From: Gnetum montanum
Taxonomy: Eukaryota > Plantae > Gnetophyta
Direction: 5' to 3'
DNA: 64,000 nucleotides
Assembly (NCBI GenBank): GCA_015680685.1
Contig: MNCI01002312.1
Location: forward strand, 453,652 to 517,651
A program made the translations under genes and the position numbers. Position 1 is the stretch's first letter, and every line of letters begins with the position of its first letter. Positions 1 to 23,859 of the stretch are shown here, piece by piece. The notes beneath the pieces were generated by a model that was given only the letters and a program-made list of their open reading frames with translations, was not told where the DNA came from and searched no databases.

Positions 1-23
1 TAGGGGTACCTCGCCACTCATCA
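1..23 (+). mobile_element. 3' terminus of an Athila-type LTR (element lies upstream of the window)
   Basis: TAGGGGTACCTCGCCACTCATCA matches the LTR ends at 7147, 18225 and 30087; no PBS follows, so it is a 3' or solo LTR inserted into the adjacent element. Confidence 0.85.
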
Positions 24-1150
24 GCTATCATAAAAGAAAGTTAGCTAACTTTGTCGAATACTATGAGTTGTTAAAAGTTCTTATTTATCAAATCACTTAG
101 TTTATATAGTCCCTAGAGTACACTACTTGAAACAAATGAAATCTCACAAAAATGCTTGAGCACAATTCTAGCAATCTACTCCTAATTTTCCCTAGAGAGA
201 AACTTCCATAAGAAAACTAAAAATAGAGATTTAATGGGTTTTAAAAAGACAAAAGAAAAGAAAGTATATTTGTTTGGGATCTCAAACATTTAAGTAAGAT
301 AAATTGACATGAGGAAACATTTCACAATAAAGCTATTCCAATTTAATCTATTATGAATTTTCTAAAACCTCTGAGCTTAACAAGCAATTTCATAAAAGTC
401 ATTTTTATNNNNNNNNNNNNNNNNNNNNNNNNNNNNNNNNNNNNNNNNNNNNNAGAACTTCCAAAAAAATTTGACAATTTTAAGATTGCAATATTAAGAC
501 AACAAATTTTAAAAATATAGAAGCTATTTTAGTCATTTCAAGGTATCAAAGATTTTCTAGATTTTCCTAAACTCAAATAGGCAATTTCTATAAGACATTA
601 CTATTAAATTACTCAAGATGCTTTTCTAATAAAGCATAACTCTTATTTGGCAAATCTTAATAGAAATCTAATGTTACACAAAAAATAGAGCTATAAAGGC
701 AACTTAGAAAAATCCAAAAATCAAATGGTAAGCACGATACTATCTAAACCATTAGCTAAGCAACTAAGATAAAATAGAAAGAAAAGAACTCATAGGATTA
801 AAACAAAGCAATTGAATTGATGAATTAGCAAGCCATCTTACAATCTTCAATATCTTTTTTCTTGATCTTCCACCAATTCCCCTCATTCTACCCATCAAGC
901 TCTTTCTATAATAGCTTAGGGTAGTTACAAACATTATGAAAAATTAAGGTGGATTACAAAAATTATGAGGGTTCGTTATAACCACCATAGAGTTAAATGC
1001 TATAGTCAACAAGTGTTTGGTAGCTACAACCACCATGGAGATTAAAAAGCTATAGTTGATAAGTATCTTATTTAGTGGTTAGAAACCATCATGGTAGTTA
1101 GTTATAACTACCATAGATATTTAAAAAATTACAATTGAGACTTGTCCATT
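24..1150 (-). repeat. Conserved LTR core (proximal U3/R/U5) shared with ~23860-25010
   Basis: Colinear matches, e.g. rc(TAATCCTATGAGTTCTTTTC) near 783-800 vs ~24193-24210 and rc(CATCTTGAGTAATTTAATAG) at 601-620 vs ~24368-24387; TATA-like TATAGAAA at 903-910 (-). Confidence 0.9.
409..452. other. Assembly gap (N run)
   Basis: Run of n. Confidence 0.99.
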
Positions 1151-1204
1151 TTTCTTACAAAATAGTTATATATATATATTATTTTCAATTTTAAAAACAA
1201 AGAA

Positions 1205-1752
1205 CGGGTCATAGCTCCAATCATTCACAATTTCTCTATTGCCATTATATCTTTCTTCATTGCAGCCTTAGAATCTTCAGAATTATGAATATCCACATAC
1301 GTTTCCCAAGTGGCTCTTCCATCGGCACTGCATACAATTTGCACATCACTCTTGCTAATATCGTTGTCTTCAAAGAAATCTACGATATCCTCAATAGTGG
1401 CAGAGAAGGGCTGTCCCCTGAGCTTCAGGACTCTAGTCTGCTTGGCCTTGTCCTTGCCTGCATCGTGAGATCTGCTTTGGAAGAAGTATAGTTGCCACCA
1501 TCGTTATGTCTCAAGTCTGCATGTTCGTTGGCTATGGCCTGATAGTAGTCCTGCTTCTTGGCACGGAAAACTTCAATGTAACGATTGCCCATGTTGTAGT
1601 GATCTTTCCTAAGAGCATACTCAACCTAAACAGAGCGCCAAATACGCAGAATTCCTCTCCGGTAAAACGATCATTCTTGTAAACAAGGAAAACATCAATA
1701 ACGTCAAGCCCGCTGAAGAAGTCACAGACATTATTTTCAATGCAGTTGAAAA
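1205..1752 (-). pseudogene. Captured fragment of plant hnRNP F/H-like RNA-binding protein (two qRRMs), frameshifted
   Basis: Translations FNCIENNVCDFFSGLDVIDVFLVYKNDRFTGEEFCV / VEYALRKDHYNMGNRYIEVFRAKKQDYYQAIANE / RVLKLRGQPFSATIEDIVDFF...DSKAAMKKD match qRRM motifs; no intron-like interruption. Confidence 0.85.
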
Positions 1753-1923
1753 TAATATTTCCATAGCGTAATGCCATCCCGGCAGGACCATGGCATTGAG
1801 GACTGCCACTTGAAACGTTTTTAAATGAGTACATCTGAACTCTGAAGTTATCTTTTATTTCTTGTCCAATGCTGCAGTCCTCAGCAGTTATCATCTGCAC
1901 TTCTATTCACAAACCAGAATCAG

Positions 1924-2139
1924 GTTGACGAGAATGCTAGCATCCACCATTATTTCGGCCACGATGCGAGCAACATGGTCATGAATCTTGTACATCTTTC
2001 CACTGGTTTTTGTGCAGGTGTGAAGCAGCTTCAACGCCACGCATTTCTTGCTGATGAGAACGACGCCATCCTTAACCACAATGTTGACAGTTGCATCTAT
2101 ATTGTCGATAGCTTCCAAAGCGTACTCCACTTGGTACTG
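1924..2139 (-). pseudogene. PAC1: Captured fragment of 20S proteasome subunit alpha-3 (alpha type-4)
   Basis: YQVEYALEAI...KDGVVLI...KLL...KMYKIHDHVA...IMVDASILVN parallels PAC1/PSMA4 YQVEYAMEAI...KMYKIDDHVACAVAGIMSDANILIN; both ends truncated. Confidence 0.9.
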
Positions 2140-2228
2140 CGAGTTAGTTGCAGATCGCATCCAAACGGAATGCCAAGCTTTGGCTAACTATATTCTAATC
2201 TTGCGGAGCATCCACTTCTTGGTGATGA

Positions 2229-2288
2229 TGCCGAAGTGAAGTTCACGGATAACACAATTGCCGTAGTGAAGTTCACGGGTAACACAAT
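2229..2288. repeat. 30-bp tandem duplication inside unassigned cargo
   Basis: TGCCGAAGTGAAGTTCACGGATAACACAAT / TGCCGTAGTGAAGTTCACGGGTAACACAAT, 2 mismatches. Confidence 0.9.
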
Positions 2289-5200
2289 TAAAACTTATGC
2301 ATGGAATCACCGTAGCTACCCAACTTTGATTAAGCTCTTTGAAATCATCATCCTCGTTATTTGAAATGCGTCACTTGATCAATACTGCAGTTTGCGGCAA
2401 CTTCTGAGATCAAGAACAGGACGTCATTCGGTTATGCGTATATCCCTCCCTTATAGTCGTACGAGCAAACCTCTTAGTAACCTTCATCAAATCTTGCAGA
2501 ACCTCCATCGACAAAGCCTCCATCTCCGTTATTTTCAAGAAGATTATTAATATCAACATCTATCACATTTCCTACATATGTTGAATCATTTGAACCTTCT
2601 TGAAGTTTTGAACTGTGAATTTCCTCTTTTTCAGCTTCTTCTATTAGCTTCTTTACAAGCTTAATACTGTGAACTATTAAGATCAATATGACAATCCTTA
2701 TTTTGATGAGGTGCCCATCTTTTGAGCTCTCTACTTAACCCTCCAGTTCTTAAATTTTGGAATAAAATTATGAACCTAGTTTTTCTTAACAATGACCATC
2801 ACTGCTCCATGAAATGGTAGAAATGTGCCAACACTAGCATAGTCACAAGCCTCCTCAATGTAGTCACACAATGAAAATGGAATTCGGCTTGTTTCTACCT
2901 CATAGTTTGTCAATGCAAGGTTACGAGAGGTCCTAGAGGAGTGTGGAGGTCAAAATATGGGAATTTAGAGTTTTTTATTTATTTTTGGAAATCCACCTTG
3001 ACCCAACTATGCTAGGACTATGCTGGCTAGCGTAGTTAGCGTCACCCCTGGCATGATTTGCAGTGTGCGATGGAATTTGACTTATTTTGGTTCAGTTGTT
3101 TGCTATTTCAAGGCTATCGGAGGTTCTATGGTGAAGTTTATGGTAAATTGTGTCAATTTAAGGCTATTTATGGTCATTTCTTCCTCAACTACTAGTGACT
3201 ATGCTAGCCAATGTAGTTGAGGCCTTCCTTAATGTAGTTTAAATAAGAAAATGATTTTTGATGGTTTTTGATAGGTTTTAGGCAATTCTGGAGCTACTAG
3301 AGATCTTGGTTAGGGTTTGGTGTATGGAGTTGTCATTTCAAATTCAATTGGGATTTTGGTTGATGTTTGAAAACATCTTCCTACTAGTGACTACATTGGC
3401 CAGTGTAGTCAAGCTATTGGTCAACATAGTTCCCACAAATGACATGTTTTGGCATGAGTTTGCCTGGTTTCCATCAATGTCAACACCTAGTTTTTGTTTT
3501 TGGCATAAGGTTTCATGGCATGGGTCGGTAGTTGGGAGGTTGGTTTAGGTAGTAATTGGGTTTTGCAATTCACTTCAATGCTTCTAGGTACTTGAAACCT
3601 AGCGTAATCACCCTAGAAAATTGAAAATCCAAGTGTATTAGGATTTCCGTTGGCTTTCTTCCTAGGCATCTAGTAGGATCCATCTTGAATTTGAAAATTT
3701 TTATGCATTAGTTTCCCACTCACCCAACATAGTCCTACTTACCAATTGTGATCATTGAGTTCAATGGGACTTGGGTGAGTGTTTTGGAAAACCAGGGTTT
3801 TCCAAGAGGATGCATAAGTATGGAAGTGATTTTCAAGAAACAACTTTACACAAATCATTCTCTTCCTACCACTTTCAAGCTCCAATGCCTTGGATCAGAT
3901 CTCTACACCTACTTCAGCACCTCCCACTTTCATCCCTGGTGTAGTTGAGGTTTTCACTCTAAGAGGCCAACATAGTTGCTTTAGAAGGCTTCAAATAACT
4001 ACTCCTACATTGATTACAACCATGTCAAGGAGATGGGCTTCCATCACTAAGAACCCTACTTTGGAAGACATTGATACTACTACCCATGGCCTCTCCAATC
4101 TACCACAACCCATGATAGCTAAAAACTCTAACACCATGATACCTAGGTATACATATTCTAGCCTTTTCTTAGAAAATTTCACTACAATCCTAGGCATTTT
4201 TTGTCATGATGGTTTGTGTGTTTGTTGTTTTTGAATTTTTTAAAAATCCTATGTTATATCTAGGCTATTTCTATGGGTTTCTTATGTTTCTTAGGTCATG
4301 GGATTGGTACATGTTGAATTAAAAAATTATTTCTACTAATTCTGGGCATTTTTCTATGGTTTTGGGCAAAAAAGCAATACCATTTTTGTATTTTTTTTTC
4401 CTATCTAAATGGTTTATATTTTTTGATTTTTGTATCTATATAGTTGTAGTACTATGTTTAATGGTCAAGTGAAATTTTGAATTACCTAATTTTGACCTAC
4501 AGTTTATTCTCTATGAATTTTTCTATAAGACTGTGCAGAGTGGGTTTTCAGTTTTAACTATTTTTATATGGTAATTTGGTAATTTTTCATGTTAGATTAG
4601 TTAATGATTTTTTTGTTTTAAGGTTGTGGGTTTTTAACTCTCTATTTAAGGATTCCAACAACTATAGAATCATGGAATTTGGATGTGTAGTTAATTTTTG
4701 GCGATTTTTTTTCCTAAACTCATGTGAAATGGGCTTTTATTATTACGGTTTGATTTATGTCACTTTAGTAGCGTTTTTTACATAAAAGGCTTGGAATTTT
4801 TATGATTTCTAGTTTTGGGTTTCTAAATTTTTGTTTCAGAATTCTAGAAACTATGGAATCATTGAATTTGGTTATGTAGTTGATTTTTAATGAATTTTTT
4901 GGTGAACTAGTGTCTAAGTGTTATTTTTTGGTTATGGTTTACTCTTGTGAAGATAGGTAGCATTGGCACTTTGGAAAATTTTTCCAGTCAATGTCTCAAG
5001 ATCTTGAGGAAGCTTTGAGGCTTTTGGGAGGATTTGCAAGTGGTTTCAGCTAAGTGAAAATTCCTTTTGATATTTTTTATTAGTTTTCTACTATGGCCAT
5101 TTTCCATAGTTTGGTGTTGTTGTGAAGTTTTCTATGGAGTGTTATGGTTTTGGTTGGAGTTTCAAATTTTTCCTAGGCTTGGAACTTCAACATAGATACC

Positions 5201-6253
5201 AAATTTTGTTGAATGTTTTATGCCCACACAACTTCCAGCCTTAGGAAAAAAAGTTTTAGCTCTAATATATCATTTTTTATCAAGTGTGAACTACCTTGTA
5301 TAGTTACAGTTTTGCCCATGAAAACTGCAAACCTTCCTATCTATACAAGTAATGCTAGTATCGATATTGGTGTTTAATGGTTTACAAAGTGTTCTACATG
5401 TTATGTTTTTAGTTCTAAATAGTAATTTTTAATTTTTATGAAAATTTTAACTATTTTTCCTAGAATTTTTACTATGGCTACTTTCACCATTAACTAGGAT
5501 GTTTAGAAAAATTTTGCAAAATTCAAGTTGGTGTTTTGACTATAGTAGTAGGTACAAGCTAGTTTTCATGCTTTTGATGTTTTTCCATAAAAATTTTACA
5601 CTTTTATGCATATCTTAGCATGGAAACTACCATCAATTATTGGTAGGTCACTTGGTTGTACATAGTTTTGTCTTGGTTTGGTTGTTTGTTTACATGAAAA
5701 ATGTTGATATTAGGGTTGTAGTTGTTTTGGCTATTTAAATTTTGGTTATATTTGGTTATGGCTATTTAGGGTTGTGATGGTTATTATTGTTTTGTGTAGG
5801 ACCTTCCTCCAACCCATCTTGGTGGTGATAGAGCTGATAGGGTTGCTATGCTGCTTCCACACCTCGAGGCCTAACACCCCACCTACTCACATGACTTTAG
5901 AGTCTGGCTCATTATGGTTCTAGCTAGGAACATAAGAATTCTTGGCCCTTTTGCTGCAAAAATTTAGTGTGATGATATGGTCACACTTATTAGCCCACAT
6001 AGCTATTGTCATTGTTGAGACCTTGTTGCCCTGATCTTCTAACTTCATCGTCAAGTTCATAGAAGACAATCCTAAGATATGCATGAAGAACAAGGTTCTT
6101 GATAGCACTCGTACAATAGGGACTTGTGAGCTATCCAAGATTTGGAACATGCTAGAGTTCAACTTGTATAATGCTAACAACACTTCGCTAATTGAACACC
6201 AGACCCACACACTATTTTAGAATCCTTCCAATACTGTCTACCATGTGGAAGGA

Positions 6254-7147
6254 TGATGAAGTGTTCAATTGATACGTCGACTGGGCCGCATTAATGGAGC
6301 CTTCTTGATCCAGCCATGTTGACATGATCCTATTGACATATCCATCAATGCATTAATGCGACCCTGTTAATGTAGAGTCTGTCTCTTGCTATAAATATGC
6401 ATGCACCCATAGCATTTATGGCATCTTTTTGGTAGTTGTAGTGAAGCCGTTGTAGTTTTTTTACGTGTAAGTTAGAATATTTCCCAAGTGCCCGCAGCAA
6501 GTGTGAGAAAGTTGTATGACTCTTTATTCAAGTGCTATGTACCTAAGCCCATTAGCATGAGTGAAAATAAAGATGAGATTTTTGAACATTCCTTGCAGCA
6601 TTTGGATTTAATTACTTAAGCATTAAAACACTTTAATATTTTGACATTTTAAGCATTCCAAAGTGCTTTATTATTATTGCTTTATGGTTATTATCCTTTC
6701 CATATTCTATGAGAACCATAGGCATGACCATCTCAAACATATATCAAACACTTGGTAACCTAGTGATGCTTAACATCTAGTAACCCAGTAGTGGTTAGGA
6801 TATGCTCAAGATATGCATGGAAGATGGGATTGATTACTTATGCTAGGAAGAATTAAACAATAGAGTAGAAAAATTACAAATTACCCAAATTTCCATTTCC
6901 TACATTAAAAGAATTAGACCTTTAAAGATAAAAAGAAAACTGATAAAAATCATTTGCCTCAATCTCACTCAACCATCACTCTAGAATATCACAGGTGAGA
7001 TTGGGAAGACAACGACCATTCTAACTAAGGTTTTGCTAGCTAGATTTCAGTGTACGTAAGTGCTTGTAGTCTCCAAAATTTGACCAAGTTGTGAGTGAAT
7101 GCTCGTGATTCATATGGTTGGACGTAGGGGTACCTCACTACTCATCA
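6254..7147 (+). repeat. 5' LTR
   Basis: Direct repeat of 17334-18225; TATAAAT near 6390. Confidence 0.95.
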
Positions 7148-7148
7148 T

Positions 7149-7166
7149 TGGTGCTATTATCAAGGA
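7149..7166 (+). promoter_or_regulatory. Primer binding site, tRNA-Asp type
   Basis: TGGTGCTATTATCAAGGA differs from the Athila consensus TGGCGCCGTTGCCGGGGA only by C>T/G>A changes. Confidence 0.8.
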
Positions 7167-7329
7167 CTGTTAGTCTTACATGCGCTATCTAGTCTTAGCA
7201 AGATCATCATTCACTTCATTGGAACGGACCTAGGATAGTGAAATCTACGCACGCTAGGTGCCTTAAGTAAAAGAATAAGGAACACTAGTTTAGTTGTTAT
7301 TTAACATCAAAAATGTATTCTTCTCATAG

Positions 7330-9800
7330 GTGATATGGATCCAACCCACTAGTGCGGTAGGAATGTCGGGTGGTATATGCACATCCAGATGAGTATATCC
7401 CCAACTTCACCTTTATCCTACATCAAGATGAGCATCTATGATGGCGGGACATGGAGGGCAACATCATATTACCTTTTTATCGATCAGTTCTTGGAATGCT
7501 ACTTCAAAATCTTGCCAAACTTGGCATTTAGGACTATGGTGTGGAATACATAATGAAGGATCATGACTACCAAGACTATCATCCAAATGAGGCATAATGT
7601 GCACAAGACTGGCAACAAGTGGAATGCCATGAACACATAAAGAGGAAATAGTTCAGTAATCCTTTTTTCTTACAGGACTTTCATGATGATGAGAAACTTT
7701 GTTTTTACGATTCCCATTCAGTAGAACCTCCTCTGATGCATAAGATCATTTAGTCCATCATTCAAAGTAAACAATCAAGCGATCAGGATCCCTAGGATGA
7801 TGAGGGATTGCACAAAAAAGATCATGACAAAGGGAAAGATGGACATGAAGATCGGGGTCATCATCAGAGCAGAGGAGGAGATTGAAATTAGGGTAGTGGT
7901 AGTTCTCCTCCTTATTTTCCATCTTCTCATTCGACCTTATCTTCACCAAGTTTTGACTTCGATCACAATCATAGTTGGAAGGATTGGGGTGATGGTGATC
8001 GAAAAGACCGATGGGATTGCAAGGACCAATGGGCACAACATGAGGAAAAGCATGACCAATCACATGAGTCTCACCATCAAGAAAGGAGATGTAGTTGAAA
8101 TCATCACAGATGCAATGGCCATCAACAAGAATATGACTCGGATGAACCACTGGTGGCTACTTGAAGCATGCTTAACATAGTCGAGGCAATTTAAATACCC
8201 AGTAGGCACTTGAAAGATAGTCAGATCAAGTGCATTAACATGAACAATATCCCCAAATTTAAAGGAGGATATAATTGTGATCCATAGACTCACTTGTAAG
8301 CATTTCATGATGCTTGCACCCTACAAACTGTAGATAATGATTGGTAGAAACTCAAGCTATTCCCCCAAACACTCATCAAGGAAGCGGAAAGATAGTACTA
8401 GTCATTGGAACCAAAATTAATCAGAAGATGGAATATGATGCTAGAAATTTTCAATGATAAATACCAAACTTACTCTAGAGTGGCTAATTTGAGATGAAAA
8501 ATCTAGGGATGGAAGCAAGGTAGCCATGAACCATTGGATGCAACCATGGGTAGATATTACTCATTATTACATTGATGCCCTCGTCATGGCTACTCTTAGT
8601 GGGAACAACTTCGTCATATCATAGATGGACTCTACTTTGAAATAAGAAAGACCCTTGGCCTTTACACTCAAGGATGACTATCTAAGTTAATGGCCCATCA
8701 ATTATAGCACCTCATTGCGTACATGGCCAAAGAGGAAGGGGAACTAAGGAAAAAAGAAAGGGTAGAAGAATATAATTAGGACCCTTCCATCCAAAATAAG
8801 GAAGTCCAATTTTGTGAAGAGGAGGAAGAATCACCACTAGATGCAACAATGAACCAAAAAACCTTGCCCATACAAGAATTTGCTTTAAAATTTTGGCCAA
8901 GTTTGAGAAGATGTGGGATTCTTTGGATGAAAGGTTCCAAACTATCCTAAAAATCACAGAGGAATCCAAAGAGTGAAGTAATGATCATGATCAGTAGAGG
9001 AGAAGAGGAGCTGAACATGCCTACCATAAAGGTAAGTGTAAAGTTGCTGCAGTAGAATGGGTTGCAGACTTTGACATAGAGGAAGATGATGGGTCTAACA
9101 TATGCCAGTATGAACATCTTAAGGGGTGTTGCTTGGTGGTGTCACATTTACAAGAGTTTGGGATGTATGCATGAATCCTTATTTGAAAAAAAGGAAAATA
9201 CCTTGCAGATTACCTTATCCCCAAGGCAATCCTAGGTAGTTCCACCAACAATGGGGATATTATCCAAGTGGAGCACAGTCGCAACCGTACAAGTATTACC
9301 AACAATGGCAACATCCACAATCATGGGGGATGCCACCTCCAAGGTAGCAGTACCCTTACTGGCAACCAAATCCTTATGGGTACTACATCCAAGAGCCAAT
9401 CTCCTTACGGGACTCTTCTAGTCACACACCATTTCAAAATATTATTATCCCTTGGAATACTTTTGAACATAGTCTCCATCGCCTAGGGGGAAAGAACCCA
9501 CATCTATACTATCCTCTGTCACCTTCTCCTACCAAATTTACTCATCAGCCCTCCACTCAACTACCTCCTGTTCCACCTATGTAGGGAGAAATACCATCAT
9601 AGCCATAGCAACATAATTCCACGAGGGTTATCAACTTACAACTGGCTTCTCAGCCAAGTGGACTAGAATCAAAACTGTAGAAACACCCTTTCTTCCAGTC
9701 CAATATCCCAAACATACCTTCACATTCACCGATGGCTAGTGCCTTTGAACCTCTAATTGCCTCCACCATTCAACCCTTTGAGCAACCTTCAAGCCAACAC
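7330..9800 (+). pseudogene. gag: gag (decayed)
   Basis: Retrotransposon-gag-like motifs at ~8240-8700 (IPKFKGG, KLKLFPQTL), Pro/Gln-rich tail; many stops. Confidence 0.75.
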
Positions 9801-9820
9801 CCCCCAAAGTACAAACTTTC

Positions 9821-12800
9821 ATGCTAACACACACTGTGATGCACTGGATAAAGGTAGGTCATCTTCCTCGGAAATTGATTGATCTTGGAAGTCCCCTCAT
9901 ATACTTTCAAGTGGCAAGAAACGAGCCATGCAAAGCTCTCTTAGATTCAAGGTTAGGCATCTATTTGATTTCACATGATATGTATAATACTTGGAACTTA
10001 CCCTTGATGAAGAAAAGCAATATTTGGCTTGAGTTGGAAAACCATTCCATAATTATTCCCTTGGGATTGGTAGAAGATATCGTGACCACTGTTTGTGGGT
10101 GGTCCTATTTTGTTGACTTCCTTGTTATTCAATTTGATCATTGTAAGGGGAATTTCATAATCATAATGGGAAGAGCCTGGCTCAACATAGTGGATGCACT
10201 ATTGTAACTCTAAGATTTCAAAAAAAAATCCTTTTGGAAAGATTGAGAAGAAGTGCATCCCATGCATTGCGTATAGTGAATCTGGGTGCAACTATGTGTA
10301 GAAACTTTGGTCCACTAAGTGGACATCTATTCAAGCATGTAGTCAGTGTGTTGAAGAATCATAGATTCAATGATGTCTGTATGTAGTAGCCACGAATCAA
10401 GAAAGCACCCAATGGCTTACCGTTGACTCTAATAGCAACACTCTATGCACAAAACCATCTAAGGGCCTTGTATGTGCTTACATGAAAAGCATGGATGAAT
10501 TGGAAAAGGTCCATAAAAAATTCTCCACTATTGATGACAGTGATGATTGGGGAAATCTACAAATCCTTAAAAGCTTTAGAAAAGAACACCTGGAACTAAA
10601 AACCTTACCAACCAATTTGGAATATGCATGCCTGCAGAATGGCAAGCTAGTAATCATCAATCCCACTCTTGCTCTTGAACAAAAGAAGAGGTTGCTAAAG
10701 ATGGTGAACAAATGGATGGATACTTTTACATGGTCATATCCTAAACTAATCAGAGTTGACCCTAGGGTATGCCAACATTGGATCTATATCAACCCCTCTG
10801 TGAATCCATGACGACAGCTGCAAAGATGAATGAACCCCAAATCGAAGTAGGTCGTCAAGGATGAAATTGAACAATTGTTGAAAGAAGGGTTCATCTATTT
10901 CATTGTGAATAGTGAATGGGTCAGCCCACTCATTATAGTACCAAAGAAGAATGACAAATGGGGAGTCTGTATATATTTTGAACTACTAAATATGGCAACC
11001 TTCAAGGATCACTTCCCAGTTCTGTTTGTGGATCAAGTGTTGGATACTATTGCAAGGCATTGTTACTATAGCCTTTTGGACAGTTATAGTGATTATAACC
11101 AAATCCAAATCGGACCCAAAAACCAGGCCAAGACAACATTTACAAGTCCCTAAGGAACTTTTGCATATAAGAATATGTCCTTTGGCCTATGCAATGTGCC
11201 TACAACATTCCAATGCCTCGTCCTTAGCATCTTTCATCAAAAAATTGGCAATGAGATAGAAGTTTTTATGGATGACTTATCTACCTATGGAGCAACATTT
11301 GAATAAGCCTTGGACTACCTTGAGAAATTTTTAAAAAGATGTGTGAAAAAAAATTTAGAGCTCAACTGGCAAAAGAGTCACTTGATGGTCCAAGAGGGCA
11401 TTGTTTTGGGGCATCAAATTTCACAAGCAGGGATTGGTGTAGACCCTAAAAAAATTAGGATCATCCAAGGAATCACCAGTCAACCAAGCACTATAAAAGA
11501 GGTTTGGTCATTCCTTGGACAGACTGGTTATTATTGATGCTTCGTCAAGAATTTCTTAAAGATCACCAATTCGTTGGTGGAACTAACAAAGAAGGATGCT
11601 TTGTTTGTCTAGAGTAGGGAATGCGAGTCTGCATTCTAAACACTAAAATAGAAACTCATAGAGACTCCAATTCTATGGGCACCTGACTAGTCTAGATCAT
11701 TTCACATCATGATGGATGCATCTAATTATGCATTGGGAACCATGCTGACATAGTTGGATGACCAACGACGTCCATGTTACATCCACTATGCCAACCAAAG
11801 CATTGTGGATGCTCAACTCAATTACACCACCATTGAAAAGGAATTGATAGCGGTGGTGTTTGCCTTGGAAAAGATCAGACAGTATGTGCTCAGATACAAG
11901 GTGTTTGTACATACAAACCACTGTTCCATCCGGTTCCTTATGAACAAACCAATGGTAAGTCCCCGTATCATATGGTGGCTCAAGATCCTTCAGGAATTCA
12001 ATCTTACTATGGTGGAAAAAAAGGGAACTAAGAATGTGGTTGCTAACCAATTATGTTGGTTACAATGGGACAACATAGAGGAGGAGGAGCCACTCTCTGA
12101 CCAATTTCCAGATGAACTCCTCTTTGCTTGAGTAATTGCCAAGGAAAGGCCCACAATATCAACTTGGTTTAGTGACATCCTTACTTATCTCTCAACACAA
12201 GAATTGCCAAAGGAGTGGGATCATCAGAAGAAACAACAGTTTCTTCGTAAGGCCAAGCATTTCATGGAAATCCACAGACACCTTTACAAGGTGTGTGTAG
12301 ATGGCTTGGTTTGATGGTATGTGCCTGATGAGGATAAACTACACATCCTTCAAGATGCTCATGAGGGCCCTTGTGGGGGTCACTTTATTGGACAATGCAT
12401 GGCCGTTAAAAACTTGCTTGTAGGATATTACTAGCCTACACTCTTCAGAGATGCTCAATGATTTGTCTACTCCTGTGAATGATGTTAGAGAGATGGTGGA
12501 ATGATAGGACGAATGGAGGGACCTCAATAGTGGATCCAGCCACTAGAACCTTTTGATAATTGGGGCATCAACATGATGGGTTCCATCACACCCATGTCCA
12601 ACTGAAAGGAATATATATTCATTGAAGTAGACTACTGTACCAAGTGAGTAGAGGTAGTAACTGTCACCAACTGTTCCTCAACCACAGCCACACGGTTTGT
12701 CCTACAGCAAATCATGAATAGGTTTGGGGTGCCACATGCACTCATTTTAGATAATGGAACTCACTTTATAGGCAATACTTTTTGTAAACTCATGCAGCAC

Positions 12801-13400
12801 TTGGAGGTCAAACATAAATTTACAACACCCTATCATCCCCAAGCCAACGAGCAAGTCGAAGTCACAAATAGGGAGATTACAAAGATCCTAACTAGGACCA
12901 TTAGCAAATATAGAAGGGATTTGAGCATGAAACTTAACGATGCTCTTTGGGTCTATCACTCAATGTGGAAACTTCCTATCTGCTATTCTCCTTATGAGTT
13001 AGTGTACGGGAAACTACCAAAACTTCCAATTCAAGTAGAACTTCGGACACTATCTACCACCAGTGACTTGGGTCTTGACTTATCACTAGCACAATGAGAA
13101 TGACTCATCAACTTGAATGTGCTAGATAAGAACCAACTAGTAGCCCAATCATCAAATGTAATACAAAAGGCCTATAATAAAAAACGTCATGATCTGAGGA
13201 TTCAAAAGGTGAAATTTCAATGTGGAGATAAGGTACTCTACTAGAACCCCACACATATACTGCAACATACTAAGTTTCAAACACTGTGGGAGGGACCTTA
13301 TATCGTTTCTAAAACCTTTTCATCTACGGCCCTACTTATCCAAAAACCTAAGAATCCAAAAAAAAACATAGTTAGCCAATATGAAACAGTTAAAACCCTT
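9821..13400 (+). pseudogene. pol: pol: protease, RT, RNase H, integrase (decayed)
   Basis: ALLDS/IIMGRAWL (PR); SEWVSPLIIVPKKN, KDHFPVLFVDQVLD, EVFMDDL (RT); DASNYALG, NYTTIEKELIAVVFALEK (RH); RFGVPHALILDNGTHF, TTPYHPQAN, WEGPY (IN). Confidence 0.95.
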
Positions 13401-13485
13401 CCACAAACTCCACCAAACCAGTGTCACTACCCTTTCATCACAAAGTCAACCTCATTCCATTTTCTAGGTCTGCTCCTCATAGCTC

Positions 13486-13500
13486 AGTTGTGGGGGAGAT
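13486..13500 (+). promoter_or_regulatory. Internal polypurine-tract copy after pol
   Basis: CAGTTGTGGGGGAG resembles the terminal PPT TAGTTGTGGGGTA at 17321-17333; a second PPT is known in Athila elements. Confidence 0.65.
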
Positions 13501-15099
13501 CATCATCCGTGCTAATAACCTCTACTGGCTCCTCAGTTGTTTTTGAAAGTTTTTTTTACAACATTCTTCATATGTTTGACCATTCTTACTTTTTCCTTTA
13601 TTTATTTCTATATGTATATATGTACTTATCTTTTAGTTGTTTTCTACCTCTCATTAATAAGCTATCTTATTTTCAAAAGACATACTAGTATAGTTGTTCC
13701 TCTTTGTGATGGTGCATATTATAGTCTGCCTATTATATCTAGTTCCTGCCTTAGCATTTCTATTCCAAGAAGTCACGTTATAATTTCATTTCATTTAATA
13801 GGCAGTAAGTCCATGTCATCCACCCATCCAACCACTCCATTGTTTTCCTTATTTTGGAAACATGCAATCCCTTTTCCATTAAAACAAATTTTAATTAATT
13901 GGTGACTTGTGTAGTTTGTAGACTTGAGGAGGACCCAATGGTTTGAATAGGGTGTGACTTCAAGGGGAATTCAACATTCTTCATACTTTTCTATTCCCTT
14001 ATCTGCAAGAGTGTCCTCATGGACTACTTACCACTCCAATATCCTCCCATACCACTACATGGGTTTTTTCATGGTGTGGTTCCCATAAAAAAACATGGGA
14101 ATTCAAAACACACCCCGTAGACCACCTCTAATGGGCTATAAGCACTAGTTATGGGACTTGTTTTGTTCCCTCTAACTTAGCCCCTTTTTCACTTCCTATC
14201 TCTCACTCATGTTGGAGTGGTGTTTGTTTGTGGAGCATTCTTATGCCTTAAAGGAATGGACTAGTCTTAGAATGTTGATGCGATATCACTAAGCATGGTT
14301 GGTTTTGGATCTGAACTAAGGATGGCTCCTACCAAGTCACTTAATCACACACTTCACAAGGGATTTCATATGACCAAACTTAGGAATTCCATTTCACTCC
14401 CTCTTCTCTCCATCATTTGCTTCCCATTACCTACCTCATTGCTAGTTTTATGTGTTGATCATTTTTTGTGCCTTGCTTGAACTCATAAATTCTTCGGCTG
14501 GTTCTCATGGTGTGAGGATTAACTTGTGGTAACCATTAGCTAACTATAGGGCCCACTGACTCCTATATTGATGATGTGCAAGTGCAACTAAGGCTAATGC
14601 CTGCTATGGGGAGAACCCACTTGCATATCCTTTGGTACCGATTGTTAATCTCCTTCCCCTTTGGTATAATTCGTTAATCATCTCCACTCTATCCATCACA
14701 TGGCTCTTCACCCACAAAGTTCCATCTTATGATATTCTCCTACCTTCAACTATTCTTTTGATGACAATCTTCCTTCCTCTTTCTATTGGATAGTTCTCTA
14801 GTCTCTAATTTCTTACATCGCCCCAACTTTGTGTTCCAATCTAAAGATTTGGGTCCTTACTTCATCGGTCAATGCAAGTCAACTAAGCTGAATAACTACA
14901 TCAACTAGGCCCCCTATACGCATCCCCCTGCATTTACGTAGCCTCATTTATGTGGCCCTATCGATGCATGTCAAAAATACTATATATACCCATGTTTTGC
15001 CTTAAAATTACTTTTCCTTGAAATTGAAAAATGATTTACTAAAAAAAACATGGAAGGTGAGCTCTACCCTTTCCCTGCCTAATTAGGAAGTTGTGAAAA

Positions 15100-17100
15100 T
15101 GGGTAGAGATAACACGTTATGCTAAAGATACACTTCATCATGCCCTAGTTGCCTCATGGTGCAAAATGATGAAAGACAAGACTCTTGCCCAATGCAAATA
15201 AGGGAAGAGTAGCAACCACCTCCACCATTGGCACAAACAACAAGGTCGAGCTCATAAACAATCATAGGACACATAAGCAAGATTTTTCAATCGCTCTTGA
15301 GCCAGCAAGAGCAATTAGTAGGAACTAGTGGTGGAGAAGACCCTTTGATGTACCACCCTGCAATGAGCCATCTTGAACAAGTGGCTCGATCTGTAAGTTT
15401 TCTAGAGAGAACAAGGTCGATGTTTTCTACCACATGAACACAAGCCTGCAAGAATAGACCTTAGTGTCTGAGAAGTAATGGTGTCCACCCAACAACTATT
15501 TTCTAAAATTTTAGAAAATGCCACTACTTTTTCTATGTGCTTGGAGGATAGAGAGGGGGTGACTTTCCTAGTAATGCAACACCAAGGATAAGAGGTTGCA
15601 GTAGAAGTGGTTGCTAAAACAATCACTATGACTCTTAATGCACCTACGACACTTGAACTAGATGTACATGAACTTGGAGATGTACAGATGTCCACAGGAA
15701 CTCAACGTAGTAGAATCAATGTAGCCCAATATGAAGAATTGTTGGACCAACTGGTGGGAACCGAGCAACCACTTCTGGATATTTTTGATCTTCTAGACAA
15801 CATCACTACCACTCAGTCAAAGTTACTCTCAACCAAGGATAAGTGCCTCATCTTGGAGGGGCAACTTGAAGTAGCCCAAGTAGATTATCAATGCTTTGCT
15901 ATGGAATTTGCCCAACTGAGGGCCCAACTTGCAAATATAGCTCTCCTCAACTGTGAACTTACTAGGGATGAAGCTTTTCAACAGCTTGAAACCAAACTTT
16001 AGACATTTGAGAATGAGTGAGAGTTGAAAATCTTTGACAAGTCCTTAATAGATGCTCAATCTTACCATCTAAATAAGGACTTAATAGAGGTTCACCAAGA
16101 GAATGTTAGGCTAACTACATAAGTTCCTTGCCTGTGCAATGTTGGTGTTGAAAATCAACACATGAAAGATTTTATTCATCAACAATAGGAGGAGCTAGCT
16201 AGGGTAAACATTGATGTAAGGAGATTGACAGTTGAAAATCATAATCTGTCCATGGAGGAAGTTCAAGCCTTGCGATAGAAATCAGCTATTGAAATCACCA
16301 CTTAGAAAAATGAGGCCCTTAAGTTTGAATGAGTAAAAAATCATTATAGGGACCAAGTGGGATTGCAAAAGGAAGTCAATAAAAAATAGATTCAAGTTGA
16401 AAAGGTTACAGTGAACCAAGCACTCCAACATCTCAGGGAAGGAGGCAAGGTTTGGAAACCCATCTTCGATGGATTGAACGCCTACAACCAAGCTAAAATC
16501 CATCTCAAAGAGCTACAGATTGAAGAGATGATAGAATACATGGAATTAGCCAATCTCCATTATGCAAACTTGGCTATGCTGATAGCTGGAAGGCTGTGGT
16601 CAAATGTGGAGAAACATGTGGCCACCTCGTATTCTTTATAAGAGGGCGAGTTCCAAGCACATAACAAGATAATGAAAAAGCTAGAAATAGTCAATGTGGA
16701 ACTCGAAGTTTTTCATACCCATTTTAAAGGATAATGCGTAGTTGTAGAGAACTTGGCTCAATGAATAAATGAATACTAGCAGTTGCAAACATCGGTCTGA
16801 GCATTCGATATTGAATGAAAATAGTTTGCTACCTAGTTTGTCAATTTGAAGGAACTCTTCCCTACACTTCCATGCCCTTGGGATGTTCCCATTCTAGCAC
16901 ACATAGGTGAAGCTACCTGGATGATGAATGATCCCAAAAGAAAAGAGAAGATGATAAGGACATTTCTGGAGGATTTTTGATTACCTCTAAAAGTTGCAGC
17001 GACTACATGAAAACCATCATCAATGCCTCAACTACCATGTGCACCAGAAGCTAGCAAAGGCCCATCAAAACCACCACCACTAAGAACTATGTGACCTTCT
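15100..17100 (+). pseudogene. Extra 3' ORF (env-position), coiled-coil rich, decayed
   Basis: ORF pieces 15607-16002 and 16411-16641; C-terminal LANLHYANLAMLI...PWDVPILAHIG homologous to ~60270-60700. Confidence 0.65.
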
Positions 17101-17333
17101 CCAGCAACTTCAACATTTCAATAGGGTTGAGAATCTATGGTTGTTAGGGTGTTTAATTCCATTGTCTATGAACATTGCAATTTTGTAATTTGGTTTGCCA
17201 TACACTAGGACACTTAATATGTTAATAGAGTTAGTGTGTGTGTAAATGTGTTTTGTTGTGTGTACCATCAATAACTTCATGCCTTCCAAATTGTAATAAA
17301 CTTGAGGATGAGTTTTCACTTAGTTGTGGGGTA

Positions 17334-18225
17334 TGATGAAGTGTTTAGTTGATACATCGACTAGGTTGGGTTAACGAAGCCTCATCAACGCAGCCACGTT
17401 GATGCATCACCGTCCACGTATCCGTCCATGCATTAACGTGACCTTGTTAATGCAGAGCCTGTCTCTCGCTATAAATATATGTGCACCTGCAACATTTATG
17501 GCATCTTTTTGGTAGTTGTAGCAAAGCCCTTGCAGTTTGTTTTCATGTAGGTTAGAATATTTCCCAAGTGCTCACAGTATGTGTGAGAAAGGTGTACAAC
17601 TCTTTATTCGAGTGCTAATGTACCTGAGCCCATTGGCGTGGGTGACAATAAAGATGAGCTTTTTGAACATTCTTTGTAGCATTTGGATTTAATTATTTAA
17701 GCATTAAAACACTTTAATATTTTAACATTTTAAGCATTCCAAAGCCCGTTATTATTATCACTTTATGGTTATTGTCCTTTTCATATTCTATGAGAACCAT
17801 AGGCATGACCATCTCAAACATATATCAAAAACTTGGTAACCCAGTGACACTTAACGTTTGGTAACCTAGGAGTGGTTAGGATATGCTCAGGATGTGCATG
17901 AAATATGGGATCAGTTGCTTATGCTAGAAAGAATTAAGCAATAGAGCAGAACAATTACAAATTACCCAACTTTCCATTTCCTACATTAAAAGAATTAGAC
18001 ATTTAAAGATAAAAAAACTGATAAAAATCATTTGGCTCAATCTCACTCAACCATTGCTTTAGAATATCACAAGTGAGATTGGGAAGACAATGACAATTCT
18101 TATTAAGGTTTTGTTGGCTAGAATTTAGTGTACGTAAGTGCTTGCAGTCTGTAGAATTCGACCGAGTCACTCGTGAATGCCCGTGATTCATATGGTTGGG
18201 CATAGGGGTACCTCACTGCCCATCA
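17334..18225 (+). repeat. 3' LTR
   Basis: Direct repeat of 6254-7147, preceded by PPT. Confidence 0.95.
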
Positions 18226-21200
18226 AAGGGTAAGCATGGTTTTAAGTTTTTGTTTTTGGCTACTGTAATTATTGGTTTTACTAGGATATTTGGTTTTAAC
18301 ATTTTTCTTGCTTGAATTTGTGTACTTATAGGTACAAGGTGGATGACAAGGGGTTCATCAAGCAGGACTAGCTTCTATTCTTAGTCCAAATAGCATTGGA
18401 GGTTTTTTCCAAAAACCCCATAGTAAGGCTTGCAGTGGTGGAGCAACTAAGAGGTGACTTGGGCAGGTACACCACATGTTACTCCAAAGCCTACCAATGT
18501 TTTGTAGCCAATGGGACAATGCATGGCTGGTGGGATAAGTCATATCTCATCCATATACCCATTGAAGGCCCCCTACAATCCTCTTTCAGCAAGAAAGGTA
18601 AGACTTATATTTTTGTTTATATTTCTATTTTCATGTCAACATTTTCATGGCTATACAATTGTAGGTTACTTAGGCTTTAAGTGTCTAAATAGTTTTAATG
18701 GCTATGTTTGACTATAAATTTGGTTTCAATTCAGTTATACTTTGTTATATTTTTTGTTTTATCTACCTATGCCTATGCTAATAAACCCTTTGTTATATTG
18801 TAGGTGTTAGCACCTCCTCCATCGTTGCACTTGTTATTTCAAGATTCTTTGAGGAGACTTTGATTCTCAAGTATGGAAAGGTGGATTTGGTGTAGCAATG
18901 GTTGGCTAGCAAGGTACCTAGGCCTATCCAAGAAAACATTGCTAATTCAAGTTTGCGTGATCCATTTTCCCCTAGCACCATTGTGTCTACCCTTGAGATG
19001 ATGAACAGCATTTACTCTTTGATCAAGGAGTGAAGAAGTTCATCATCCAAGTTCATGGTATTCTTGTTACCTTAACCATCAATGAATCCACTTTTAGTGA
19101 TCTCTTTGGTATTCCTCGTGAAGGCCTAAAGTTTGTCACTAAGGTGGGTAAAGATGTGGAGCACCAAGAGGAGGTGGAGGAGCGGCTAGGCACTCGATGT
19201 GATCATAACGGGTTGTCTTGTAGCCAATTCAAGGCTAAGGAGGCATATCCCTTATTCCACTCCTAGGGGTTCCCCAAGTTGTTGTCATAGGGAAAAATCA
19301 TGAGAATTGAACATGTGTGAACCATGAAGAATGTTATTTTGGAGGATGCTCAATTCAACTAGATTGGTCACTTAGTTTCTAGGCTTCATGGTGAAATCCT
19401 CAAACTCCATGACAACCTCACAACAAAATGCCACATGCATTATGCATTCTTCTCAACATATTTGAGGAGGTTCATGGAGTTCCTATTGGTGAGGAAGGAT
19501 GGAAAATGGGTAAGCCAATATCCATTCTAACTCTTCAAGCCATGTGTTAAACATGTTTATCCCACTATGTAGACTCAGAACCAGCCACAGGATGTTGGGT
19601 AGTCATCGTCTATTACCGCTAAGGCACTTAGTGGTAGGTGTTGTGTTTCCCTTGATAGCATGGGGATTCAGCCCTAGGTTATGCATGGAGATGTAGATCA
19701 GGCTAGGACATTATGAGCTGAAGCTGAGGATTTAGCTAGAGCCAAATTGAAGAGGCCCATGGTCAAATAGGAAGCACAAGTCATTAAGTAACCCTCCAAG
19801 AGTAGGTTTGTGGTGAGACTGGGCTCAATAAGCAATGTGGTCACAAGTATGATTTAACTTATCTCAGTTGTTTCACATTGTTGTATTTTATGTTATAGGG
19901 CTATATTGTTATTATAAGGCAAGATATACTAAGTTATGCCATGTTTTGCTCTTATTGTTGTTGTGGACAAACAACAAAAGTTAGCAGACCAAGTAACAAT
20001 AATAGATGTGGAGCAAAGACACCTAGAGGAGGAGATCCTAGAACACCATGAGGATGAAGGATTATCTAATTCCCATTGGATGACTTTGAGACCATATTCA
20101 ATTTCTCACAGCTCAGTTTACCACCTGTCATCATTTGAGAGGATGCTCCAAGTACGTATGCGTTTGTTTCATGTGTTTAAGTTATGTTGCTTTGTGCTTA
20201 AGCTTGGTCTTAATTGTTTATGGGTTGTTATGCTTACCTTAGATACTAAGCCATAGCCTACAACCTCCACCTCCACATTTGCATGAAGAAATGAGTGAAC
20301 ATTCTAAACAAGAGGGAGTTCACGTAGGGGATAGCAAAGGATATGATTGATCAATTGCATTAGGTTGCTCCCGATATGGGTAAGTACTTAGTTCATCTTG
20401 CACTTTATATTTTTTGCTTTATTGTTGTATTGTTTTAGTTATTTTGTTGTTTGTTATTCTTTGGCTATTTGGTTACTTATTGTTTTTGCTTATGTTTTAG
20501 TTTATGTTATTTTTAATACCTATGCTTAGATGAGATCCCAACCATCCCATTGAGATCAATGCCTTACCTAGCCTATCATCAAATGTAGAGAGTGTACCAC
20601 ATACGTTATATGAAAGTGCCACTGATTGTGCATTTTCATGTACCAAAAACTTCATGGGAAATTAAACATTCCAATGAGTTCCTATGGAAATGTGTTGTAG
20701 TGTTGGAGAAAGAAAACAAGAGACTAGTTGAGGTAAACAAAGATCTCAAGGATCATAAGGAATTCGTGAAAGCCCAAGTGGCTAATAGGAATTCCTTGTG
20801 AACCAAGGAGATCGAATGGGCACAGTACTAGAATGCCATCCATAGCAAGGTTACCCTTGCTTGGTAGGTTGCTGAATAGAAGCTGCAAATTAACTTGCAC
20901 ATGCGCAATACTAAGGAGTAGAGAGACTGTTGTGCTTGGATTCTTGAGTGGGATAGAGCATAGAAGGACCGCAAGAAGAAGTATAAGGCTGAGCATGAAG
21001 CTTACCTTAAGTGCTTAAAGGAGGAGTCCATCAATCAACGCAAGTTAGAGCTATTTGTGAGGGGGATTTAGGCAGAAGATGTCTTTGAACTATTTGAAGG
21101 CATCCTAACCATGGTTGGATCCCCATCTCCTAAGATGTCCATCACTACCACTTTTGGAGAGGTGACTACTAGGACATTTTCATGAGAGCCACCCACATGT

Positions 21201-21452
21201 ACAAACATTGATGACAACACCCTAACAAGTAGAAATCTTGGGGAGGTGGATTGGGCCCACATGACTGAGGAACAGATCCTCCATCATTTAGAGGTTGGTC
21301 TTTGAAATCTCTCACTAAAAGATGTTGCTTCTAGGCCCTTTGAAGTTTGCTTATTTAATTTTGTTAGCACATTTTGGTCATTTAATAAAGTAGGCTTTAT
21401 GAGATATATTCCATCCTTCTTTTTATGAATGCTACACGCTATTTTTTTGTGG

Positions 21453-21818
21453 GTGAGAAGCAAGGGACCTTTCTTGCTTTACAAAGACGAACATCAAAAG
21501 TGCTGCAGAATTAGGAGGGTTGCACCACTTACGTGAGCCCTTAAAGGCCTTAGGGCTTGGATAACTGGATAGCGATAGACCAGCTTAAACGTTCCTATTG
21601 TCCAAGTGGATCCATCGTTGAAGGGCTTGATGACGGTGTGGGCAGTCTATTTAAATTTAACCTACTAGCCAGTGTTAGCGGTGACATTTTAACATTGTCT
21701 GAAAATTATGGCGGGAAATGAATACTCCCGTCAACGCTTTGCATTCTCAGGCGTACGTTTCTATTGGATGCGAGCCATGCACAAGGTCACTGTTGCCGGG
21801 CAACCTGAATTAGAAGGA
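21453..21818 (+). pseudogene. APR: Captured 5'-adenylylsulfate (APS) reductase fragment
   Basis: VRSKG...HQKCCRIRRVAPL.*ALKGLRAWITG...VPIVQVDPS/EGLDDGVGSL.K...[20 protein letters not shown]; diagnostic plant APR motifs with frameshifts; absent from the ORF track. Confidence 0.92.
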
Positions 21819-21834
21819 GCAAATTGCATTACTT

Positions 21835-22222
21835 CATCAAACTTGAAAGTGGGCCGCTCCAGTCATGGAAAGTGTCTGTGAGATGGCAAGAAACAGACGG
21901 ACAGTCCTGCACAAGCTGGCGCATCATATTTTCAACATGAACCACCATGGCGCTTCTAACGGATTTATAATGCTCTAGTCTGTAAACGTCTGTCCGTCTG
22001 CGGTGGAAGTCAGTCTGGAATCTGCAAAGATCTGAGATCAATTCCCAGAGCATCTCTGCTCTGAAGAATTGGGTCTTCTCTATCATTGGTTTTCAGCAAC
22101 TCTACGTGGGCTGCTTCTGTGTTGACGAATGTGACCACTACACCTGCCTCTGCAATCTTTCGCACCAGCTGAAGCATCGGATTCATATAGCCCTGCAATG
22201 GAAACACAAACGCTACCACATG
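21835..22222 (-). pseudogene. Captured UDP-glycosyltransferase N-terminal fragment
   Basis: [19 protein letters not shown]...VTFVNTE...LQIPD and, after a frameshift, PSVSCHLTDTFHDW. Confidence 0.9.
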
Positions 22223-22476
22223 CCCGAAGTCTACAATTCAGTGACAATCCAGATTATGCCTACTTGAAGAATTTATTTCGTGAATTGTTTATTCGACAAA
22301 GTTTTGAATACGATTATGTTTTTGACTGGACCATCTTAAAGTACCAACAAGCACAGAGTTCTAGATCAGCGCCAAAACTTTTGTCGGTACAGCAAGATCC
22401 GGGTAGTAGAGCACTGCAATCATCTGCTACATTTGGTGCAGCTACCGGCACTGTTCATGAGCAAATTGAAGCTGCC
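22221..22476 (+). pseudogene. CK1: Captured casein kinase 1 C-terminal fragment
   Basis: [42 protein letters not shown]. Confidence 0.92.
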
Positions 22477-22550
22477 GAATTGCCAGAAAGGCTCAGTGCG
22501 ATGAGCTTTGTTAGATGTCCAATATCAGGCACAATAATCCTCTCCAAGCC
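22477..22550 (-). pseudogene. Captured single plant extracellular LRR (RLK/RLP-like)
   Basis: [25 protein letters not shown] fits LxGxIPxxIGxLxxLxxLxLxxN. Confidence 0.7.
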
Positions 22551-23029
22551 TTCCAGTTCCTTCATGACGAAAATCTCCGCAATGACTGGGATATTCTGTT
22601 GAATGGTGGAATGGTGCAGGAAATGGCACACATTGCAAACAAGCAAGAATAATAAAAAAGACTGCGTATCACTGTTGCGCATGAACAACCAGAATTGAAA
22701 TCAGGGGAACATGCTAATCCTGCAAGAAAGCAGCACGGATGCATCGGGCTCATACATGATCTACGCATTGGTGGATATCGTGGCCATGAATGTCGTATTC
22801 AGCGGTGGAGATCCCAACTACGTGGCTGTCCTTCCATCAGGATTTGCCATTTACCGGATGGCACGTGCTCACAACGTCCAGATTCTGATAAATTCTCGTC
22901 TATGACTTGCTCAGCCGGTGGTGTGGTGCTACTGTTGGAGGATCTCTTCTCACAGTAGCATTTCAGATTTTAGTTGATTCAGCTTCCACAGTGAAGCTTT
23001 CTCTTGGCTCCGTTGCAACTGTTAACAGT
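22551..23029 (+). pseudogene. Captured class IV HD-ZIP (ATML1/PDF2/HDG-like) C-terminal fragment
   Basis: [28 protein letters not shown]...CVSLLR...[48 protein letters not shown]...[15 protein letters not shown]...[11 protein letters not shown]. Confidence 0.95.
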
Positions 23030-23194
23030 CAAAATCCACTACCAGTGCTCAAGAGCTTGGCTTCATGCAAACACAGAAGCAGTGTAGATTATGGAACTGC
23101 ACAAATTATATCATTGAAGAGAAATTCTCAGATTCTAGAGGCAGAGCAACTGCAGATTGAAAGAGTTCTGTGAAGCGAAAGAAAGAAAGAAACA

Positions 23195-23601
23195 ATGGCA
23201 GGAACAGAGGCGGACGCCGTGGATTTCGAGCCAGAAGAGGACGATCTCATGGACGACGACACGGCAATGGATGAAGCTAATGCTAACACCGATGCAGCAG
23301 CTCCGGCTTCTGCTCTAACCCTGAACGCAACAATCGCTTCTCCGGTTGCGATTTCGAGTCACTTGATTCAGACGGCGGCCCTGGCCCTCAGATATGTATT
23401 GAAGGATGGATAACTTTGGTAACTGAAGTTCATGAGGAAGCACAAGGTGGTATAACAAATCTGAATGGAGCTGAGCTGTTAACGCAGACCATATCTGTTG
23501 ACTGGGCCTTCAGTAATGACCCTTTTAGGCGCAATACGGTCAAGAGGAGGTCACCACGCCGTGGTCATCGATCTAGGAGTCCAGCGAGGAGAAGATACTA
23601 G
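23195..23601 (+). pseudogene. Y14: Y14/RBM8A (exon junction complex) retrocopy, ATG to stop, two internal deletions; 3'UTR-like sequence follows to ~23800
   Basis: AVDFEPEEDDLMD, DFESLDSDGGPGPQ..IEGW, VHEEAQ, LNGAELLTQTISVDWAFS, RSRSPARRRY*. Confidence 0.95.
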
Positions 23602-23859
23602 ATGTCTTTGGCTATATCTCTACTTAGAGGCTTGCTGTAAGTGTTTATGTATGATTTTCATACAACTTTTTCCTGTAAGTTTTACATTTTTGTGGTGAGT
23701 CACCGTTTAAAAGTAAAGTATTAAGAAGCATCGTATGGCAATCCACACCTCTTAACATGTTTTTCTTATGTATTATTAATATGTACCTAACATTGACATT
23801 TGAACAAAGCTTTAAAATGTTATCGATAAAAGAAGAAGACAAAATTATGTGATAGTTAT

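Follow-up and report, generated by a model that had tools for sequence, protein, structure and literature searches.

How do pieces of unrelated host genes come to lie beside the same retrotransposon sequence, and to differ from one copy of it to the next? The question is raised by a 64-kb stretch of Gnetum montanum DNA (contig MNCI01002312.1; the whole 64,000 nucleotides are called the window here), which is AT-rich, plant-like and packed with old nested retroelements. Two units in the window, copy L (~3729 to 23, minus strand) and copy R (plus strand), lie 21 kb apart, share a core and carry different host-derived sequence, the cargo. The best reading of copy L is that it represents an old, 3'-truncated long terminal repeat (LTR) of the same retrotransposon family as copy R. 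The explanation that we favour for the cargo, and to which we give even chances, is that host mRNAs were captured into the distal unique 3' region (U3) of the LTRs of this family by template switching of reverse transcriptase (RT). The parts of the two units are as follows.

23 to 894, minus strand: non-coding part of the core, resembling the repeat region and unique 5' region (R/U5) of an LTR; BLAST match to 25011-24043 at ~80% identity; interrupted by a gap of N at 409-453
895 to 910, minus strand: conserved TATA box motif, which recurs only at 24073-24088 (plus) and 63922-63936 (plus), with 0 occurrences expected by chance
940 to 1150, minus strand: repeat and palindrome cluster at the start of the conserved core, in which a GGTGGTTATAAC-like motif recurs in direct and palindromic copies
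1151 to 1244, minus strand: AT-rich linker from cargo to core, read directly and not alignable to copy R
1245 to 1905, minus strand: hnRNP F/H-like cDNA fragment with two quasi-RNA recognition motifs (qRRMs), seen as three overlapping collinear pieces that match hnRNP H/F
1915 to 2187, minus strand: cDNA fragment of a proteasome alpha-3/PSMA4-type gene (plant PAC-type), about codons 16-89, identified by PDB matches
2190 to 3718, minus strand: variable distal part to which no origin is assigned, with no Pfam match and no similarity to copy R
3719 to 3729, minus strand: proposed 5' tip of the L LTR, attachment site (att)-like, TGTTGGGTGAG, matching the pattern TGT(T)GGGTGAG
21448 to 25239, plus strand: copy R, the comparator, solo-LTR-like and with different cargo; same tip motif, and same core at 23863-25011

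A conserved core in two copies

Comparison of the window with itself shows that the core of copy L (23-~1150) is homologous, in inverted orientation, to that of copy R (25011-~23863). BLAST aligns 23-401 with 25011-24620 (77.6% identity, E 5e-81) and 476-939 with 24506-24043 (74.6% identity, E 4e-70), both inverted. At aligned sites the two cores are ~80% identical (Kimura two-parameter distance ~0.23), evenly along their length. A weaker, repeat-rich match extends to ~1120-1150 in copy L and 23890-23863 in copy R, and no alignment between the copies was found beyond ~1150 / ~23863. The initial annotation had described a core of ~1.1 kb homologous to copy R, a homology that stops at ~1150/~23860 and an L cargo that copy R does not have in common. 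The comparison bears out all of this: the stop falls at the same point in both copies, and neither the DNA nor the peptides of the L cargo match anything elsewhere in the window. Nor does the window contain a further copy of the core.

The gap of 45 N (409-453) falls within the non-coding core, where no reading frame is at stake, opposite 113 nt of copy R (24507-24619). Both flanks of the gap are collinear with copy R and in the same orientation, and therefore are consistent with one continuous copy with ~113 nt unread. Copy L does not have the last ~228 nt of the R LTR (25012-25239). Because window positions 1-22 are unrelated to that tail of copy R, we take copy L to be cut or interrupted at 22/23, with its U5 end missing.

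The point at which the homology ends recalls another class of element. Under this alternative, the core would be a transposon terminus, either the conserved 3' terminus of a Helitron or one end of a Pack-type transposon with terminal inverted repeats (TIRs), and the host pieces would be ordinary DNA-level captures. Helitron families typically combine a constant end with differing cargo, and the homology does end at CTGA followed by T in copy L (20-23) and at CTAG followed by T in copy R (25008-25012), that is, at CTRR and then T. An AT-rich 16-nt palindrome also lies 19 nt upstream of this end, in copy L only. However, the palindrome is weak and not conserved in copy R, where the block and its inverted-repeat tip reach 228 nt past the CTRR point. 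A Helitron end would have no use for a conserved TATA box, and long TIRs and a target-site duplication (TSD) of 9-10 bp are both absent. The fragments, as described below, look intron-free and seem to begin at mRNA 5' ends. We consider this origin very improbable.

The core is laid out like the promoter-bearing part of an LTR. We suspect that it comprises the proximal U3, the TATA box and then R/U5, with the promoter being predicted and the U3 assignment drawn from this order of parts. Downstream of the TATA box lie 0.9-1.2 kb of AT-rich non-coding sequence. The repeat cluster of copy L has an RNA fold z of -3.4, and its counterpart in copy R occupies 23890-24040, with a weak match also at 63662-63750. 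The latter site belongs to a third, distant relative of the promoter block (63662-63936, plus), which runs off the end of the window and combines an GGTGGTTGTAAC-like motif with a near-identical TATA box at 63922. The GC-rich sequence directly upstream of it (62.6-63.4 kb), rich in open reading frames, has no Pfam or PDB match, and a UGT fragment that had been guessed at 62.9-63.4 kb is unsupported by either database.

Copy R has a perfect 40-nt palindrome (23952-24036, 100% complementary) with an N at its centre (23996) and a further N at 24037. Within an old repeat so diverged (~80%), it may be the product either of hairpin-driven conversion or of an assembly artefact. Such structures could also have made the locus break. 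In this scenario, the palindromic cluster would be a fragile site, repaired after integration with cDNA filler, independently in the two copies. The perfect palindrome of copy R and the structured repeats of copy L do lie exactly at the border, and random ligation would explain both the mixture of sense and antisense pieces in copy R and the near absence of linkers. The scenario predicts, however, that the distal U3 past the cargo should be homologous between the copies over more than 11 nt, which it is not. The palindrome surrounds an N and may itself be an artefact of assembly, and a chain of apparently 5'-complete fragments better suits copy-choice. We hold filler repair to be very improbable.

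Host gene fragments in the variable block

Copy L carries pieces of two verified host genes, proteasome alpha-3 and hnRNP F/H, and not of a longer series. Both had been proposed in the initial annotation, and both are confirmed by their best matches (E 2.6e-19 and 5.6e-14, respectively). Matches to the qRRMs of hnRNP H/F cover 1228-1503 (the best), 1428-1625 (E 1.8e-5) and 1535-1906 (E 0.026) of the minus strand; because these three pieces overlap in coordinates, the fragment has no room for an intron. It reads, in order, a 5' untranslated region (5'UTR)-like stretch of ~70 nt, a putative ATG at 1834-1832, the first qRRM, a linker and most of the second qRRM, inside which it ends. Its ~590 nt of coding sequence are interrupted by frameshifts alone.

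The proteasome piece (1906-2187, minus) has its strongest match in a spinach 20S proteasome alpha chain (7qve_j, residues 16-90), followed by yeast alpha-3 (E 1.4e-11) and human PSMA4 (E 7.6e-8). A protein homologue search with this piece returned no match. It has a putative initiator ATG at 2160-2158 and ~225 nt of coding sequence. Its upstream end lies at a possible start or at most ~15 codons from one, and it stops at about codon 89, directly abutting the 5'UTR-like stretch of the hnRNP piece.

All verified host pieces of copy L lie on the minus strand, in sense orientation to the TATA box of the core. The host pieces are 5'-proximal or apparently 5'-complete, truncated at the 3' end and without poly(A), and they are joined with little or no linker. 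LINE-type retrocopies show the opposite pattern. In layout the pieces of copy L are intron-free, which suggests that introns were lost.

Several host gene pieces are also present in copy R. A retrocopy of Y14/RBM8A (23186-23601, E 4.6e-17) is adjacent to the core and extends from 3'UTR to 5'UTR, after which comes the 3' part of a different coding sequence.

The rest of the variable block in copy L is less informative. The initial annotation saw unassigned coding-like pieces here, a description for which no support was found. None of 20 unassigned pieces of 2190-3729 has a Pfam match, and HMMER, run against 1.84 billion representative proteins, gave 0 matches for an 86-aa piece at 2477-2734 (minus). 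Tandem repeats make up part of the block, with a degenerate one of 193 bp at 2877-3431 and a 30-bp duplication (93% identical) at 2229-2288. Scans with Rfam (e.g., for hammerhead/retrozyme) and for tRNAs gave 0 matches.

The ends of the units

The outer limit of each unit is suggested by a short motif. On both strands of the window, TGT(T)GGGTGAG occurs at only two sites, 3729-3719 (minus) and 21448-21457 (plus). Each lies at the outer edge of its cargo block and in matching orientation, the site in copy L being 1.5 kb past the verified cargo. The motif is the inverted repeat of the 3' end of copy R (...CCCAACA at 25239), and in the L tip, TGTTGGGTGAG, this inverted repeat is perfect over 7 nt. 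Copy R reads TGTGGGTGAG...GGTCCCAACA, with TG...CA-type ends that form a short inverted repeat; the 3' end of copy L is missing. Four generic TGTKGG-type sites occur on the L side, and by our estimate the chance that one of them has the same extension is ~1%.

We place the units at 21448-25239 (copy R) and from 3729 to below 23 (copy L), because the tip motif is shared and is the inverted repeat of the R end. The L unit thus probably runs to 3729, not 2700. As read from these ends, the units look like LTRs of ~3.8-4.0 kb, with a constant tip, a variable middle of 2.4-2.6 kb and a constant promoter/R/U5 part. The sequences flanking copy R, TTTTT and TATTT, match at 4 of 5 positions in T-rich sequence, as do those for an alternative start at 21362. 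The latter is where an initial annotation of copy R began the LTR; the motif shared with copy L suggests 21448 and a length of 3792 bp. A search of the L side with the first 140 nt of copy R gave only noise.

Copy R as a discrete insertion

The neighbouring retroelements show that copy R is a unit in its own right. It is inserted in one of two very diverged (57-70%) paralogous gag-protease elements that stand head to head, X1 (18993-28912, minus) and X2 (39997-55400, plus). The gag and protease regions lie at 28142-28693 and 26360-26701 (minus) in X1, and at 40216-40767 and 42230-42568 (plus) in X2. Blocks 26398-25706, 21320-20961, 19558-18993 and 5993-5795 of X1 are collinear with 42533-43283, 43916-44272, 45620-46195 and 53680-53878 of X2. 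Three collinear high-scoring segment pairs have E values of 1e-5 to 8e-22. The distance between collinear blocks is 4386 bp in X1 and 633 bp in X2, and copy R, with its cargo as well as its core, therefore constitutes a single discrete block of ~3.75 kb that X2 lacks.

This discreteness bears on another explanation, which invokes the same reverse-transcription chemistry but in which only the core of ~1.4 kb is a true LTR. Copies L and R would then be dead-end chimeric cDNAs or truncated non-autonomous elements of the Bs1 type, in which host pieces replace the internal sequence upstream of the core, each unit having been made once and never amplified. In its favour, the known LTR-mediated retrocopies lie between LTRs and not within them. 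The homology begins at the same point in both copies, beside purine-rich tracts like those of a border between an LTR and a polypurine tract (PPT), and the far end of copy L has no R-like sequence past 11 nt. However, a single discrete insertion with one core would require that a 5' LTR was later deleted exactly, and the sharing of the tip, which is also the inverted repeat of the 3' end, would have to be a coincidence, with a chance of ~1%. The inner border of the core also forms no TG...CA-type inverted repeat with the 3' end. We regard this explanation as unlikely.

A further alternative is that copies L and R are the inverted arms of a single composite element of 25 kb, so that the 'two cargos' would be one interior. 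The cores are indeed inverted, with the cargo facing inward. However, the flanking sequences GCCACTCATC and TTTCAGTTTC give no sign of a target duplication, the arms are only ~80% identical, copy R by itself is a discrete insertion in X1, and between the cores lie X1 sequence collinear with X2 and a nested element of 12 kb. We hold this alternative to be extremely improbable, and rejected it on the absence of a TSD and the X1 sequence in between.

Copy L adjoins the interior of X1, and its flank and tip weakly resemble X2 55264-55390 (2 of 300 shuffles reach the score). Copy L may be the 3' LTR of X1; no L-like 5' LTR for X1 was found in the window.

Other retroelements are nested here. Like copy R, N1 (6253-18225) is inserted in X1; it is a complete Ty3/gypsy-type element with LTRs 86% identical and with RT, RNase H and integrase pieces. 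The 6.7-kb element Y2 (46607-53267, LTRs 85% identical) is inserted in X2, and accounts at least in part for what had earlier been taken for a gene housed between protease and pol. No RT or integrase is detectable in X1 or X2. Direct repeats at 36720-38740 and 57835-60002 (72% identical, rich in internal tandem repeats of ~90-250 bp) may be the LTR pair of X2. Another LTR family starts with TGTTGGATAYCCAATAT at 61069, 34094 and ~29285 (plus). Its first ~420 nt, at 61020-61485, are 86% identical to 29236-29702 and the sequence downstream differs. Here too, LTRs may begin alike and then continue with unlike sequence.

How the cargo may have been acquired

In both copies, the cargo stands between two retrotransposon sequences, the tip motif (10-11 nt) and the core. 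The initial annotation allowed for the cargo to belong to an independent DNA transposon, and we checked for one. The TIRs or TSD of a separate DNA transposon were found neither around the cargo nor around the unit, and the outer flanks of copies L and R do not match.

Capture into the distal U3, which we favour, could have proceeded during reverse transcription. After the first strand transfer, RT would copy the R region and the proximal U3, and would then leave its template, the element RNA, at the upstream border of the structured repeats. It would switch to a co-packaged host mRNA and run to the 5' end of this new template, jump into the next mRNA and finally return to the element RNA near the U3 tip. 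Capture at the RNA level is suggested by the layout of the pieces, and junction microhomology may have been involved. An insert at this position would disturb neither integration nor promoter function, and it would be heritable because U3 is copied into both LTRs.

If this happened more than once, the family would have a permissive slot between the U3 tip and the promoter, repeatedly refilled with run-off-chained, 5'-complete pieces of host mRNA. We put forward this idea of a lineage only tentatively, and rate it as less than probable. Repeated capture by the family is plausible, with two copies seen. The initial annotation had gone further and treated capture as recurrent. In support of this, the two copies have different cargo at the same border. 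Its model of a constant promoter/att module beside a variable distal U3 fares similarly: the TATA box, the repeat cluster and the shared tip around different cargo fit, and a two-LTR element, a primer-binding site and a PPT are missing from the window. When metagenome contigs were scanned for exact occurrences of 21-22-mers that copies L and R have in common, 0 matches were found.

Several observations weigh against capture into the U3. Recurrence is judged from copies L and R, the former lacking its last ~228 nt. The window holds no two-LTR element of the L/R type and no second direct copy flanking gag-pol. A search for primer-binding sites of the initiator methionine tRNA near the two copies found no relevant site, and no PPT adjoins either of them. 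Antisense pieces are also present in copy R, which simple minus-strand switching does not explain. The shared tip is only 10-11 nt long, and copy R could possibly start at 21362, with TGTTAGCAC; the alignment of X1 with X2 does not decide between this position and 21448. Finally, 1.5 kb of the L 'cargo' has no recognisable origin.

Relation to known gene-capturing elements

In plants, DNA transposons (Pack-MULEs, Helitrons and CACTA elements) are regarded as the chief agents of gene-fragment capture, and the captures known for LTR elements are rare and lie in the internal region. Pack-MULEs, Pack-CACTA elements and gene-carrying Helitrons resemble copies L and R in having family-constant ends around variable mosaics of host fragments in either orientation. 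However, they capture intron-containing genomic DNA, and have either TIRs with TSDs of 9-10 or 3 bp or TC...CTRR ends. The pieces in copies L and R, in contrast, look cDNA-derived, and the units have TG...CA-type ends and a possible 5-bp duplication.

U3 variability is a feature of plant LTR elements, as in the Tnt1 subfamilies, and in BARE-2 the LTR took up Wis-2 sequence by template switching. As in copies L and R, the U3 of these elements can be replaced on a large scale without change to R/U5 or the ends. Unlike here, the replacing sequence is regulatory or derived from retrotransposons, and does not consist of spliced host gene fragments.

Template-switch (copy-choice) capture by LTR elements is documented, including chimeras of multiple genes (Tan et al. 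2016, PMC5131818). The Bs1 element of maize (Elrouby & Bureau) is a case of LTR-mediated capture of host mRNA in which the cargo replaces internal sequence between the LTRs. Both resemble copies L and R in that partial, intron-free copies of unrelated host mRNAs lie head to tail within LTR-retrotransposon sequence, and the mechanism proposed for them, copy-choice in the virus-like particle, is the one that we suspect here. The differences are that the cargo of copies L and R apparently lies inside the LTR (distal U3), that different cargo occurs at the same border and that no two-LTR element is seen. A survey of maize (Baucom et al. 2009, PMC2774510) found many LTR families that carry host gene fragments; in no LTR element did these derive from more than one nuclear gene. 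Unlike those elements, copy L has pieces of at least two host genes and copy R of several. In the collection of literature that we searched, we found no description of host-cDNA mosaics inside LTRs.

On our reading, copies L and R extend what is known of gene capture by LTR elements and do not call for a separate category. If this reading is correct, the repeated uptake of spliced host mRNA pieces into the U3 would add a route for exon shuffling, spread gene-homologous sequence under an LTR promoter and allow cross-talk between transposons and genes through small interfering RNAs. The apparent chain of 5'-complete fragments would be a direct sequence read-out of RT template jumping in plants. 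If the slot was refilled repeatedly, the LTRs of this family, solo LTRs included, would be heritable and amplifiable carriers of ever-different mosaics of host cDNA, and thus a retro-counterpart of the Pack-MULEs.

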